Translations under genes and position numbers: made by a program
Origin: Octopus bimaculoides
Lineage: Eukaryota
Length of the DNA: 64,000 bases
Direction of reading: 5' to 3'
Assembly: GCF_001194135.2 (NCBI RefSeq)
Contig: NC_068996.1
Coordinates: 9,800,924 to 9,864,923, forward strand
Shown: in pieces, positions 1,475 to 57,492 of the stretch
How positions within the stretch are numbered: the first letter of the stretch is position 1
How the letters are laid out: every line of letters starts with the position of its first letter
Notes under the pieces: generated by a model
The model's database searches: none
What the model saw: the letters and a program-made list of their open reading frames with translations, nothing else
What the model was told of the DNA's origin: nothing

Positions 1475-1526
1475 TCATCCACATGTTTCACAAAACACAT
1501 CATCTTGAAGATTTGATAAGAAATCC
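1475..1526 (-). CDS. VPS9-domain protein terminal exon 19: DFLSNLQDDVFCETCG*
   Basis: ttcttgcag acceptor, phase 2, TGA at 1477-1475; total CDS 1575 nt is a multiple of 3. Confidence 0.75.
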
Positions 1527-2233
1527 CTGCAAGAATAATGTTGAAAAGAAGAATATTAGTAAAGATAATGGAAGTGGGATAGTGGTGGTGAATACTTTTC
1601 TTTATCAATTTGTTTTTTTATTTTGCTTTGTGGGAGTCTGTAAATTTGGACATTGATGTACTGATTACTGGATCAGGTATGTTTATAGTTGGATGTCTTT
1701 CTAACTGAAGTGTATGTGAGAATTATCATCAATTTAATATCCACTTCCTCATGCTTGCATGAGTCAGTTTGAAATCGTTGGGGCTAATTTTCTATGGTCA
1801 GATGACCTTCATGTTGCCAACCCCCACCTGTTTCAAGCAGGTTAATATTTCTCCATGACCAGACATTTCACAGAAGCATTCGTTTACAACTTGCACCATG
1901 TTAAGGCAAGGGCACACTAACACACACATATACATACAACAGACTTCTTTCAGTTTCCACCTACCAAAATGACTCGAAGCATTAGCAGGCCTGAGACTAT
2001 AGTGGAAGACATTTGCCCAAGGACCATGCAGTTGGACTGATTCCAAAGCCATATGATTGGGAAGCAAGCTTCTTACCACAGAGCCTCTCTTTGGATTTTC
2101 CTAGACCACAATATAAAAGCTGTAGAAAGATTCAATATCAGTGAATGTCTCTGCAAGGAAGTGTTTGAACTTCTACGTGTTTGTGCATTAAAATGTACAA
2201 GTCAGTTGTTTATGTGAATTAACATTTACATAC

Positions 2234-2330
2234 CCTAAATCAGGTTTTTTAACACTTTTGCTGGTACTAGTACTACTCTTCGTCGGGACTAACTCTGTAG
2301 ATGTTATCGAGATCTTCTTACTGTAAGGTC
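2234..2330 (-). CDS. VPS9-domain protein exon 18: PYSKKISITSTELVPTKSSTSTSKSVKKPDL(G)
   Basis: tgtttacag acceptor, gtatgt donor, phase 1 to 2. Confidence 0.8.
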
Positions 2331-2872
2331 CTGTAAACACAAAACAGCTATATTTATAACAAAATCTAAAATTTCACATTCATAGCAAGAACTTGTGTGA
2401 GAATTTGTCTCAAGGGACAGTTGCTTGGAAAGCTAAAATACTAGTGAAATTTTTAAACTGAATGAAAATATTTCAAAAGGAAGAACAAAATATCTTTATG
2501 TTGATTTCCAGAGTAAAAGGAATTTAAGGGATGTGGCTTTCTCTTTAAAAGGAAGAAAATATTCTAGCAAAGAAACTGTTTATTCCATAGTTAGGAATAC
2601 ACCATTTTGTGGAATAGTATTCTTATAGCTGAGATTATGTACCTTTAATCACTAGATCATAGTCAATTGTAAACATTCTGCTAGATCAATAGACTTCCTG
2701 CATTTGCAGCCCATTGCTGGTGTATTTCTCTGTCTTCTTTCATTACTACTACTACTACTACTACTACAACTATAGACTCTACTCTTAAGAACTTAACTGG
2801 TTACAACCACATCTGTTGTACTCTGCTTTTCAACTAGGATAGCCTCATTACCAAAATCTGTTCTTATAATGT

Positions 2873-3253
2873 GTTGGCACTCCATTCCTTACGACGTCGA
2901 GGGTTCCAGTTGATCCAATCAACGGAACAGCCTGCTCGTGAAATTAACGTGCAAGTGGCTGAGCACTCCACAGACACGCGTACCCTTAACGTAGTTCTCG
3001 GGGATATTCAGTGTGACACAGAGTGTGACAAGGCTGACCCTTTGAATTACAGGCACAACAGAAACAGGAAGTAAGAGTGAGAGAAAGTTGTGGCGAAAGA
3101 GTACAGCAGGGTTCGCCACCATCCCCTGCCGGAGCCTCGTGAAGCTTTAGTTGTTTTCGCTCAATAAACACTCACAACGCCCGGTCTGGGAATCGAAACC
3201 GCGATCCTATGACTGCAAGTCCGCTGCCCTAACCACTGGGCCATTGTGCTTCC
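2873..3253 (-). mobile_element. tRNA-derived SINE family C (~385 bp)
   Basis: A box TGGCCCAGTGG and B box GGTTTCGATTCC; reverse complement of 15696-16083. Confidence 0.85.
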
Positions 3254-3753
3254 ATGTTCTTATAATAGATCTGGACTAATAAACAACTTTTGAAGTTAAT
3301 ACTTAAATTAACCTTTTAGTATTTAAACCAGTCATATCCAGCCCAGATATTCTACTTATTTTATGTTCAAGCCAGCCAGATCTGGCCTCTCACACCTACC
3401 CTAGAATGTCATTTTAAAAATATGCAATCACATCATTGAAATCTCAAAGCTATAAGATAAGGTATGATTTATTCAAAACAATAGGAATAAATAAGGATTA
3501 CATTAAATAGTTGGAAAGGGGTTAATTTGACAGCGTGTTTCTCTACCTCCACGTTTATCTGCAATCACAAGTCTTTGGTTGCCCAACCAACTAGAAAATG
3601 TAGCCAAACTGTATCCTGTCACCTTATAAAAGAAGTACATATTGAATAATATTGTTCCAAGAAGAGACGAGATAGGTGTGTCTGTTCTATCAGAGTTGAT
3701 CCAGGTTTAAAAAATAACAACAATGCCAATGAATAATCATAAATTCTACTTAC

Positions 3754-3943
3754 CAAATATACTACTAGTCCTCTTATTCTTAACAGGTGCCTCTTCATTG
3801 GATATCTCCCTGAGACGTCTTGTAATATTGTCCATTGTTTCATCTAAACTTCTTGGCGGCCGGCGCCTTTCCAGGTGAGTATTTAGTGTTGTGACTCCAG
3901 ACGAGGATTCACTATATTTCATACGTGCACCCATTGTTTCTGA
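3754..3943 (-). CDS. VPS9-domain protein exon 17 (S/T/R-rich tail): SETMGARMKYSESSSGVTT...NKRTSSIF(G)
   Basis: contains ORF 3746-3934; tttttag acceptor, gtaagt donor, phase 0 to 1. Confidence 0.8.
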
Positions 3944-4004
3944 CTAAAAATTAGAATTATACATCAGACAGATACATATATATATATATATATATATATA
4001 TAAT

Positions 4005-54821: not shown

Positions 54822-55016
54822 AGTAAATTTTCAGATTAACACCCACAAAATTTTCACTAGGGTATTAGGGTTAGGGTTTTAGGGTTAGGGTTACGGTTAG
54901 TGTTAGGGACGGAATTCCCTAACCCTAACCCTAAACCCTATCCCTAAAACCCTAATCCTGACCTTAGCCCTAACACCCTAGTGAAAATTGTGCAGGTGTT
55001 AATCTGAAAATTTACC
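54822..55016. mobile_element. Merlin-like palindromic MITE with TTAGGG/CCCTAA arrays, copy 1
   Basis: ~45-bp TIRs (aGTAAATTTTCAGATTAACACC...); 8-bp TSD ataacctc/aaaacctc. Confidence 0.7.
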
Positions 55017-55616
55017 AAAACCTCTTCCTATTTTTGTAACCTAGTCATTGCGATGTCTTTATTTTTGTGTTAGGGCCCAAATGGCTAATAAAGAAATCAT
55101 TGTCAGACAAAATGCCTTGCAAATATTTTGTTATGGTCCTTTATGTTCTGAGTACAAATCTCACCGAGGTCGACTTTGCCTCTCATTTTCCCAGAATAAA
55201 GTACTGATATCGATATAGTTGAGTAATCCCTTCTCCCAAATATGTGGTCTTGTCCTAATCTTAGAAATCATCATCGTCATCAAGGTAGTATAATGCCGGT
55301 AGAAGAGCAGACAAAGTACCCTGTATTTTTTTTTTTTTCTTTGCATGGTTTAGTCACAAGAGGAAAGGCAGCATCTATGACTCCTCACATTTGTCAGGGT
55401 CTCCAGGATTGGTTGTGTGCATGGTGGGGAGGGGTAGTTTATTTTATTCTTTTTCTATTTTATTAATTTTTTTTTTTTTACAGAAACCCACATTTTCAGC
55501 TTTAGAGATTCCGATTCTGAAAAAAAAAATTGGCAAAAATCGCAATTTCAAAATTTCACAGTATTCCTCATTTTACTGTGGGAAATTTCTCTGAAAGAAA
55601 TCTTTGCAGAAAGGTC

Positions 55617-55779
55617 GGTAATTTTTCAGATTAACACCCGCACAATTACCTAACCCTAAAACCGTAACACTAACCCTAACCCTAAACCCTAATCCTAACT
55701 CTAAAACCGTAACCCTAACCCTAACCCTAACCCTAACACCTTAGTGAAAATCGTGCGAGTGATAATCTGAAAAATTACC
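55617..55779. mobile_element. Merlin-like MITE, copy 2 (CCCTAA half only)
   Basis: GGTAA...TTACC termini; 8-bp TSD gaaaggtc/gaaaggtg. Confidence 0.7.
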
Positions 55780-56108
55780 GAAAGGTGAGTAGATTGATTA
55801 CATATTTCTTTCACTATTTTATCGCAGTTTTTTTCGCCCAACAAATTCTTGTGAGAGTTGGCTGTTCTTTCTAGCATGTGTATAGCCTGCTTGACGGCCG
55901 GAGGCTTGAGAGGGGAAGGTTTGGGGTAATTTTTTAAATTTTTTTTTTTTGAAAAATTAAAATATTACAAATAATTTATTTTCAGAATCATAATCTCTGT
56001 ATTTTTTCTACGTATTTCGCCAAAAAAAAATTCTGAAAAAAGTGAAAAATGAAGAAATGGGGGTGGGGGATAGAAATTTTGAAATTGCAATTCTTGCCAA
56101 TTTCTTTT

Positions 56109-56342
56109 GGTAATTTTTCTGATTAACACCTGCACGATCTTCACTAGGGTATTACGGTTATGGTTTTAGGGTCAGAGTTAGGGTTTTAGGGTTAAGATTA
56201 AGGTTAGTGGTTAGGGTTAGAGTTACGGTTAGGGACGGAATTCCCTAACCCAAACCCTAAAACTCTAACCGTAACCCTAACCTTAAACCCTCACCCTAAA
56301 ACCCTAGTGAAGATCGTGCGGGTGTTAATCTGAAAAATTACC
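56109..56342. mobile_element. Merlin-like palindromic MITE, copy 3
   Basis: GGTAA...TTACC termini; TSD tttctttt/tttttttt; centre AGGGACGGAATTCCCT shared with copy 1. Confidence 0.7.
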
Positions 56343-57438
56343 TTTTTTTTTTCAGAATCGGAATTTCCATAGCCAAAAACGTGGATTTCCGTAAAAAAAA
56401 AATTATTAAGGGTGGGAGGGGTTCGGTTACGTCTCTACCATGTGCGCCGCAGAATAGCAAAACTGATCGAGTGTTGAAGAAAAAGCTTAACAGTGTTTTA
56501 GCTGACCATTCCTCGTTTCTGGAATCGAATCCCAGTAGAGTTGACTTCATCACCCATTCCTCGGGTGGGTGGGAAAGGTCGATCAAATAAATACCAGTCA
56601 TGTGTAGAGGATGCAACTACAATTATCCAGCCCACATCACTTGCATTGAACCAATAAAATAAACTGATATACTCTATCGATAAATATGATGATGAAACGT
56701 GTCCAGTATACGTAGATCTAGGCGTGGTTGCTGAATTGCATACCTTAAAATAATGCGCATCATTTGGGAAGTTTAGTCTCAAACTGCACATTAGCACTTG
56801 ACAATTTCCAAGGTGTCGCTGGGATGTTCAGGTGAGTCGATCATTTCATTCTCTAAATCTCTATCTAACCCGGCATGAGTGCCTTTAGCAGTTCCATTAT
56901 ATTGCAAGAATTCTAGCCAGGTTTTCCAACTGAGAAAAACTTCCCCTACTTGTCACCAGACACAAATACCCTGAAAAGTGTTAAAGGCACTGATCTTTCT
57001 TCTGTAGCTAAAATAACACATACTTTCATACATGTATACATAATTATTTATATAGGAGCTGAAATTAGAGTCAGCTGTTTGACAATTCCAATCTCAGCTG
57101 ACAGAACACATTTCAGGGAGATTCTAAAAATAATACGCATAAATGAAAACAATCAAGGCAGAAGAAAAAGAAACATGTTAAGTTAGTTGATAACATTAGC
57201 TACCTAACAGGATTCTTATGACTAGTGTAAAGAATGATAATTATTTTTAAGTTTAGGAAACGAAATCAATTTATAAGACAAGATTCTAAATTCGTCTGCT
57301 GAACGCAGAAGCATAACTTTCACACGCTTTCTTGCTTATATCTTTTTAAAAAATGTTTTTGTTACCAAAAGATGCTTTCACATTTCGAACACAGTTTTCG
57401 TTTCCATCGAAATAAGCTGTTATAATTGTTATATTTAC

Positions 57439-57492
57439 CTGAAGGGCCTGATATACAGGATTAATGTCCAACTCGTCAACGTCAGCTGCCAT
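57439..57492 (-). CDS. VPS9-domain protein (ANKRD27/VARP N-terminal-like), exon 1: MAADVDELDINPVYQALQ
   Basis: caagATGGCAGC start context; 54 nt; donor CAG|gtaaat; resembles the ANKRD27 N-terminus (MALYDEDLLKNPFYLALQ, from memory). Confidence 0.85.

Follow-up and report, generated by a model that had tools for sequence, protein, structure and literature searches.

A 19-exon octopus gene that probably encodes an ankyrin-less VPS9 Rab GEF of the VARP subfamily

A 64-kb window of the Octopus bimaculoides genome (G000:C16:9800924-9864923, the whole stretch of DNA analysed here) carries, on its minus strand at positions 57492-1475, a 19-exon gene for a 524-aa protein with a VARP-type N-terminal domain (N-domain), a helical bundle, a VPS9 domain and a Ser/Thr-rich tail. 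This is very probably an intact, single-copy gene for a VPS9 Rab guanine nucleotide exchange factor (GEF) of the VARP subfamily, belonging to an ankyrin-less sister family of VARP/ANKRD27. VARP itself is a hub linking retromer, SNX27, VAMP7, Rab32/38 and Rab21; its ankyrin domains bind VAMP7 and Rab32/38, and its CHPLCxCxxC zinc-fingernails (Zn-fingernails) bind VPS29. An original prediction for this locus, read from the DNA letters, had claimed that the encoded protein contained neither ankyrin repeats nor CHPLC motifs, and Pfam and regular-expression scans of the 524-aa protein likewise found none. According to the published model, VARP is pan-eukaryotic, occurring without ankyrin domains outside opisthokonts and without Zn-fingernails outside Holozoa; the modules were added stepwise on a single VARP line, first the ankyrin domains and then the Zn-fingernails, with the non-holozoan Varp-like proteins as VARP precursors (PMC6032885, PMC7539009).

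Gene model, domain architecture and catalytic residues

The gene was reconstructed by a tblastn search with the Octopus sinensis protein P0001 (a RefSeq entry), followed by splice-site-constrained chaining of the exons. P0001 was one of twelve homologues (472–543 aa, with VPS9 as their sole domain) retrieved with a seed of eight hand-read exons. The 19 exons have AG acceptors and GT donors throughout and consistent phases, and together comprise 1,575 nt. The translated protein shared 508 of its 524 residues (97%) with residues 20–543 of P0001, an agreement far beyond chance, and when it was compared with the whole 2.34-Gb assembly, it matched this locus only. The splice-aware reconstruction coincided exactly with the complete, phase-consistent model and the end coordinates of the original prediction. 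The locus is a real, ordinary and correctly modelled gene that had already been predicted.

Pfam reported VPS9 (PF02204) as the sole domain, at residues 278–389 (62.7 bits against a cut-off of 27). A family profile matched the helical bundle (HB)-VPS9 core of Rabex-5 (1TXU, 4Q9U; 1e-13) and Arabidopsis Vps9a (AtVps9a), and profile positions 6–127 matched the solved N-terminal domain of human ANKRD27 (9nvt_A, E = 7e-7); the single octopus sequence matched 9nvt_A weakly (residues 6–122, E = 0.08). AlphaFold2 (AF2) was run on the 97%-identical O. sinensis orthologue, whose numbering is used for the model, with a 31-sequence alignment. It predicted a confident α/β N-domain at residues 24–136 and a helical HB-VPS9 tandem at residues 165–408, in both cases with a predicted local distance difference test score (pLDDT) mostly above 90. 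Foldseek matched the model to 1TXU, 2OT3 (Rabex-5 with Rab21) and 2EFC in the PDB, in other words to Rabex-5, including its Rab21 complex, and to AtVps9a, with a probability of 1.00 and a template modelling score of up to 0.76 (normalised to target length). The ANKRD27-like N-terminal domain, the helical bundle and the VPS9 domain that had been recognised by eye were all borne out by these comparisons.

In the profile alignment, SDDLIP of the octopus protein lies opposite ADDFLP of Rabex-5, and SYCLV lies opposite GYYFT. The Rabex-5 residues concerned, which we take to be D313 (the Asp-finger), P317 and Y354 with catalytic roles, have close counterparts throughout the short family: in the alignments, the Asp pair D352/D353 is invariant and T350/S351 nearly so, and the Pro and Tyr of the catalytic set are nearly invariant. 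Because the fold, the Asp-finger, the Pro and the Tyr have been kept, the catalytic machinery of a VPS9 GEF is intact. An alternative is that this VPS9 protein is weak or dead as a catalyst and serves mainly as a scaffold or Rab-binding adaptor. Human VARP is reported to show only weak GEF activity on Rab5 in vitro (PMC6032885), and the position of Rabex-5 T357 is occupied by Val in the octopus protein, both of which would fit such a protein; however, the conservation of the Asp-finger pair, Pro and Tyr and the superposition of the predicted HB-VPS9 fold on active GEFs make this alternative improbable.

The octopus protein thus resembles Rabex-5 (RABGEF1) in its HB-VPS9 tandem fold, its catalytic Asp, Pro and Tyr and a helix after the VPS9 domain, and the profile alignment extends into the Rabex-5 residues past the VPS9 core (4Q9U). 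In contrast to Rabex-5, it has a different N-domain, lacks the A20 zinc finger and the MIU ubiquitin-binding region, and is not known to have a Rabaptin-5-binding coiled coil. When Rabex-5, RIN, GAPVD1, ALS2 and VPS9D1 were considered as the family of this protein, none of their extra domains was reported by Pfam. They were rejected on this ground and because the N-domain matches that of VARP and the closest homologues all belong to the VARP subfamily, the group of proteins that the trees described below covered.

Separation from VARP and distribution of the short family

The same genome has a true VARP/ANKRD27 gene on another chromosome (G000:C3:100801432-100818612(+)). A search with the N-terminal 492 residues of limpet VARP gave collinear exon matches at G000:C3:100801432-100815954, and the full-length limpet query added an ankyrin exon at 100818451-100818612 on the same chromosome. 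These exons encode ILFEETFYN, TSDDLLPLL, KLCHPLCSCDKCE (which includes CHPLCSCDKCE) and the first ankyrin repeats. Their translations contain KINILFEETFYNAADESYRVLC, STPMGKLYCIQR, MTSDDLLPLLIFIIVKSEIPNW, KLCHPLCSCDKCETL and ALHVAAAAGHAELIDILVYHGASVDATDYMGLTPMHLACQKG, and all of these strings occur in P0126, an octopus VARP of 952 aa with two CHPLCxCxxC motifs and five ankyrin regular-expression matches; therefore, the genome contains a true VARP elsewhere, and the claim that the present gene is not the ANKRD27 orthologue holds. When compared with VARP sensu stricto, the short protein has the N-domain and lacks the ankyrin domains, the Zn-fingernails, the LFEETFY motif and the position in the tree. 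When human VARP was compared with the window by tblastn, only noise was obtained; the exons are too short and divergent.

One could instead suppose that the gene is the octopus ANKRD27 orthologue with a truncated model and that its ankyrin and Zn-fingernail exons are hidden in assembly gaps or lie farther downstream. The distance from the end of the gene to the window edge is 1.5 kb, gaps are numerous, the left flank is 13% N, and annotation pipelines label the homologues “ANKRD27(-like)”, all in keeping with that supposition. Against it stand the true VARP, with CHPLC and ankyrin sequences, on the other chromosome and the placement of the short protein in a different clade from VARP. Furthermore, neither strand of the window and the 160 kb to its left, that is, downstream of the gene, had ankyrin-like or CHPLC coding potential, and a tblastn search of the same region with octopus VARP gave no match at E ≤ 1. 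Splicing onward to ankyrin exons left of the window, which would have contradicted the original prediction, is thus not indicated. Most short homologues end 10–21 residues past a C-terminal LGDFL motif, and an RNA-seq-derived contig of another cephalopod has an ankyrin-less open reading frame (ORF), with an upstream in-frame stop, that terminates at this point and is followed by a 3-kb untranslated region (UTR). On this evidence, a truncated orthologue is hardly tenable. A look-up of the contig encoding the O. sinensis protein found nothing on record.

The assembly gaps do not appear to have removed any coding sequence. Eleven runs of N lie inside the gene span, all of them intronic: one in intron 14, six in intron 9, two in intron 5 and one each in introns 3 and 1. 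Five of the 11 are at 34136-34338, 42321-42464, 43352-43959, 47361-47394 and 50324-50527, and the other six had already been flagged. The junctions flanking the gap-bearing introns (ALQ|TNF, FKG|QYY, YNK|IYK, TVT|KCC and PLL|VKV) aligned collinearly with those of O. sinensis, Argonauta and ten other homologues, without the loss of a residue, and the same junctions matched the uninterrupted ORF on the cephalopod contig; no coding exon has therefore been lost in a gap. In the last exon, which ends at 1475, the sequence is G-DFLSNLQDDVFCETCG-TGA; LGDFLSNLQDDVFCETCG followed by the stop codon is the true end of the protein and not a misread splice donor.

Phylogenetic trees were constructed from 415 core positions, from the N-domain to the end of the VPS9 domain. 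In a FastTree analysis of 134 sequences, the ankyrin-bearing proteins formed one clade (support 1.0) and 72 animal short sequences another (0.998). An IQ-TREE analysis of 49 sequences (LG+C20+F+G4 with posterior mean site frequencies) gave support of 100/99 for the short animal clade and 100/99 for the ankyrin clade, in which the octopus VARP P0126 was placed, so the phylogeny upheld the idea of a separate paralog. The internal order of the IQ-TREE topology was broadly like that of the species tree, with deuterostomes, chelicerates and lophotrochozoans. A constraint uniting the molluscan short and long forms cost 235 log-likelihood units and was rejected by the approximately unbiased (AU) test (p-AU 3.9e-6). 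The clade split and the AU test indicate that the two lines were already separate in the bilaterian ancestor. The N-domain and VPS9 domain common to both proteins, together with a first seed search that returned mainly molluscan matches, might suggest a recent cephalopod or molluscan duplicate of VARP that secondarily lost its ankyrin half. However, in addition to the penalty for grouping the molluscan forms, orthologues occur in an amphioxus, a hemichordate, a crinoid, chelicerates, insects, crustaceans and an annelid, and the same C-terminal motif is found in Amoebozoa and a fungus, making a recent duplication extremely unlikely. The short form is probably the older architecture rather than a VARP after domain loss.

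When 1.84 billion representative proteins were searched exhaustively with HMMER, 2,949 matches were obtained. The top matches spanned the full length and were of about 500–540 aa (short orthologues overall, about 450–540 aa), and proteins of 950–1,340 aa matched over the N-domain and VPS9 region only (E about 1e-44 to 1e-54). Named short members came from gastropods, bivalves, cephalopods and a siboglinid annelid; from horseshoe crabs, ticks, mites and a spider; from locusts, crickets, cockroaches, termites, odonates, a mayfly, stick insects and a sawfly; from a crab and an ostracod; and from a crinoid, a hemichordate and amphioxus. Both forms co-occur in Patella vulgata (524 and 1,106 aa), Crassostrea (530 and 1,099–1,119 aa) and Branchiostoma (518 and 1,337 aa). 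No vertebrate, dipteran, nematode or yeast name was found among the matches, but absence from these groups is not proven. Ankyrin-less proteins with a (PPDVI...)LGDFLxxL C-terminus were also found in Balamuthia and Ceratiomyxa (Amoebozoa) and in the fungus Calcarisporiella. Ankyrin-less homologues are therefore present in many other molluscs, as the original prediction required, and far beyond them. Its description of an uncharacterised invertebrate paralog stands in part: no paper describing the ankyrin-less short family was found in the searchable library, but “invertebrate” is too narrow for a family that is bilaterian-wide and has like proteins in Amoebozoa and a fungus.

The regular-expression scan covered 150 representatives and other retrieved proteins. 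Each of the 14 ankyrin-bearing proteins among the 150 had a pair of CHPLC motifs but no LGDFL end; neither ankyrin nor CHPLC sequences occurred in any of the other proteins scanned. The short protein is like metazoan VARP/ANKRD27 (about 950–1,340 aa) in having a homologous N-domain followed by the HB-VPS9 tandem, both belong to the VARP subfamily, and many invertebrates have both. It differs in lacking ankyrin domains and Zn-fingernails and in having a tail (helix, SIFG and LGDFLSxLQDD) that occurs in no ankyrin-bearing VARP scanned. In RefSeq and UniProt, P0005, P0018, P0023, P0029, P0056 and others are named “ankyrin repeat domain-containing protein 27(-like)” or “putative uncharacterized protein DDB_G0284213”; the former name is misleading for ankyrin-free proteins.

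Exon structure and repeats of the locus

All exons are on the minus strand. Exon 1 (57439..57492; aa 1–18, MAADVDELDINPVYQALQ) begins with the ATG at 57492, a start (MAADV) that most of the aligned homologues share. The segment 57764-57784 (-), with an ATG upstream of the main one (MKFDVNC) and then a GT donor, may be a non-coding 5′ exon. A similar 5′ exon in isoform X2 of O. sinensis adds 19 aa to the ORF; in the window, a splice from 57764-57784 to the acceptor that closely precedes the main ATG would give TAA.

The N-terminal domain is encoded by exons 2 to 6. Exon 2 (49115..49220; aa 19–54) gave a high-scoring segment pair 100% identical to P0001, exon 3 (47786..47822; aa 54–66) contains the block HLLKPSPFFKG, which is mostly invariant across the short family, and exon 4 (44869..44936; aa 66–89) leads to exon 5 (44499..44554; aa 89–107), in which ILNEEIGYN (44528-44502) is the counterpart of LFEETFY, the SNX27-PDZ-binding motif of VARP. 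The domain ends in exon 6 (40237..40293; aa 108–126) and is followed by a linker in exon 7 (37715..37779; aa 127–148). The helical bundle starts in exon 8 (37101..37140; aa 148–161) and continues through exon 9 (35446..35562; aa 162–200) and, after the 16.5-kb intron 9 with its six assembly gaps, exon 10 (18843..18919; aa 201–226) to exon 11 (16581..16740; aa 226–279), where the VPS9 domain begins.

Exon 12 (13966..14037; aa 280–303) contains TPLEKL (14004-13987) and, like exon 13 (11615..11681; aa 304–326), belongs to the VPS9 domain. Exon 14 (10260..10300; aa 326–339) encodes TSDDLIP (10286-10266), with D333, the Asp-finger, and P337 equivalent to Rabex-5 D313 and P317. The VPS9 domain continues in exon 15 (7837..7940; aa 340–374) and ends in exon 16 (5133..5247; aa 374–412), which carries SYCLVTLKAAV (YCLVTLKAAV at 5246-5217), with Y375 aligned with Rabex-5 Y354, and also starts the tail. 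The Ser/Thr-rich tail occupies exon 17 (3754..3943; aa 413–476), with the conserved helix SLDETMDNITRRLREISNEE (3850-3791) and SSIFG; exon 18 (2234..2330; aa 476–508), which ends ...KKPDLG; and exon 19 (1475..1526; aa 508–524 and TGA), which completes the C-terminal motif LGDFLSNLQDDVFCETCG.

Remnants of mobile elements occur in the introns and flanks. In intron 9, the region 26711-26870 lies inside a stop-ridden remnant of a Tc1/mariner-type DDE transposase (...QQDSAPCHTSRRIQSWLSDNF...PPNSPDCNPL...), for which the Pfam match to DDE_3 is a pointer only. A 10-N gap in this region (26786-26795) separates the two identical 75-bp copies of a direct duplication (26711-26785 = 26796-26870), which looks like an unmerged assembly overlap or join artefact without effect on the gene. 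An ORF at 23789-24121 (-) in the same intron has a weak GIY-YIG match (E = 0.009; ...NLIYVLKCGGSDGGYIGQT...) and is probably a remnant of a Penelope-like retroelement. In intron 3, an ORF at 46957-47433 (+), broken at 47361-47394 by a gap, is a retroelement remnant with a match to zf-RVT, the zinc-binding region of reverse transcriptases (E = 2e-4). At 1913-2090 lies a short interspersed repeat of which at least 40 copies, about 80% identical, are spread over many chromosomes. Another short element (...GHPAVETLPNQIGAWC... in translation) occurs on the minus strand at about 4036-4131, 12378-12473, 28262-28384 and 50544-50669. About 5 kb upstream of the gene, a 213-nt inverted repeat with 91% complementarity and a 12-nt spacer (62253-62690) resembles a foldback element or a miniature inverted-repeat transposable element.

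Tail motifs, partner coupling and the meaning of the short line

The Ser/Thr-rich tail is variable and holds three conserved islands in the alignments, namely a helix of the form (R/S)LDxxhxxIxxxL/IxE (SLDETMDNITRRLREISNEE, aa 444–463, in the octopus protein), SIFG, and LGDFLSxLQ(D/N)D...GKQ. All three are present in the octopus gene, on the minus strand at 3850-3791, 3766-2329 and 2238-1499, respectively. The position of the LGDFL motif at 10–21 residues from the C-terminus was found in most of dozens of short homologues from many phyla, and the Ser/Thr-rich tail ending in LGDFLSNLQDDVFCETCG that had been described for this gene is thus a conserved protein end. In the AF2 model, the tail (O. 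sinensis residues 412–543) is disordered except for a helix at 463–480 (pLDDT ~67) and a short C-terminal helix at 526–535 (~51). The pancrustacean members P0040, P0046, P0048, P0056, P0068, P0097 and others end soon after the tail helix, which reads DRQxExxTxMIEASTRE. Because these members keep the helix and lack LGDFL, the helix is the more universal tail element. Searches of the library for the C-terminal motif, DDB_G0284213 or “ANKRD27-like” found nothing relevant.

The PDZ pocket of SNX27 is bound by residues 95–101 (LFEETFY) of the human VARP N-terminus, and SNX27-dependent recruitment, of the supercomplex or to membranes, fails in the mutants T99A and F96A/E98A/F100A (PMC11817943, Sci Adv 2025). 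In the alignment to 9nvt_A, the octopus short protein has LNEEIGY at this position. The motif reads IL[NSG]EE[LI][GA]Y in the animal short clade, mostly ILFEET[FY][YF] in true VARPs, and ILFEE[LV]FY in non-metazoan short forms. Amoebozoan and other non-holozoan ankyrin-less Varp-like proteins resemble the octopus protein in their N-domain, HB-VPS9 tandem, low-complexity tail and, often, the same LGDFLxxL motif, and they differ in keeping ILFEE[LV]FY and in having longer tails. Since the octopus motif reads LNEEIGY and the Thr equivalent to T99 is replaced, binding to SNX27 in the VARP mode is unlikely, and the protein probably does not contact the SNX27 PDZ domain in the manner of VARP.

As the ankyrin domains and Zn-fingernails are absent, the VARP contacts with VAMP7, Rab32/38 and VPS29 cannot form in their known mode, and the earlier suggestion that the GEF module is uncoupled from retromer and VAMP7 is a sensible reading of the missing modules. 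A different reading is that the protein is rewired rather than uncoupled and reaches retromer/SNX27 or another sorting coat through its N-domain or tail motifs. It keeps the VARP-type N-domain, which is the SNX27-binding module of human VARP; the E, E, Y and N of the SNX27-motif counterpart are invariant; such conserved tail motifs typically dock partners; and ankyrin-less VARP-like proteins predate the Zn-fingernail (PMC7539009). On the other hand, the equivalents of F96, T99 and F100 are N, I/L and G/A, and nothing in the protein is like the His/Asn-Pro-Leu contact by which VARP and TBC1D5 engage VPS29. We therefore regard rewiring as rather unlikely, although it merits more weight than the other alternatives. 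Yeast Vrl1, of the VINE complex, is a VARP-related VPS9 GEF that is independent of Zn-fingernail/VPS29 binding (PMC9507130). Unlike the octopus protein, Vrl1 has an ankyrin-repeat domain, which reportedly binds the SNX-BAR protein Vin1.

If the octopus protein is the GEF that its core suggests, the Asp-finger of the HB-VPS9 core would enter the pocket in which a Rab5-family GTPase holds its nucleotide and so promote GDP release. By analogy with VARP and Rabex-5, Rab21 would be the likeliest substrate, and then Rab5 or Rab22. The N-domain and the conserved tail elements may provide localisation or regulation, and the tail helix and LGDFL motif could be docking sites for a partner or an autoinhibitory element like that of Rabex-5. 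The helix after the VPS9 domain occupies the place at which Rabex-5 extends past its own VPS9 core, and one of its plausible roles is autoinhibition.

Several points weigh against the interpretation of this gene as an intact, retromer-independent Rab GEF of an ancient ankyrin-less line. GEF activity on a Rab5-family GTPase, the Rab specificity and the loss of retromer coupling are all properties that we infer from sequence and predicted structure, and the residue at the T357 position is the Val noted above. AF2 did not dock any of the tail elements on the core (pLDDT about 50–67), so autoinhibition has no structural support. The insect and crustacean short members keep the tail helix and lack the LGDFL end; therefore, the motif is not essential to the whole family. 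An alternative exon may lie in an assembly gap, and the left flank is N-rich. The tree has no root, and support is low at its deep nodes among non-metazoan sequences (90/77, 87/87), where the non-metazoan short forms branch from the two animal clades; the exact point of duplication is therefore left unplaced.

With these points in mind, we tentatively propose, at slightly less than even confidence, that animals have two ancient VARP lines. One would be an ankyrin-less “proto-VARP” in which the tail helix and LGDFLSxLQ form a hitherto undescribed targeting or autoregulatory module of a retromer-independent Rab21/Rab5 GEF, and the other would be the ankyrin/Zn-fingernail VARP, which arose beside it by duplication. 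The supplementary file of Herman et al. 2018 (PMC6032885) does not name Lottia, Branchiostoma, Nematostella or Capitella; therefore, that study probably could not see the animal short form. If the two-line reading is true, the short line was overlooked since vertebrates, Drosophila, C. elegans and yeast appear to be without it.

The interest of these results lies in the family rather than in this locus. The published model has a single VARP line, whereas the octopus and many other invertebrates, such as amphioxus, locusts and cockroaches, keep a second line without either module. The recognition of this line corrects database names that imply ankyrin repeats in ankyrin-free proteins, and LGDFL is a candidate new short linear motif. 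Furthermore, a natural relative of VARP that is putatively “GEF-only” would help to part exchange activity from retromer/SNARE scaffolding.

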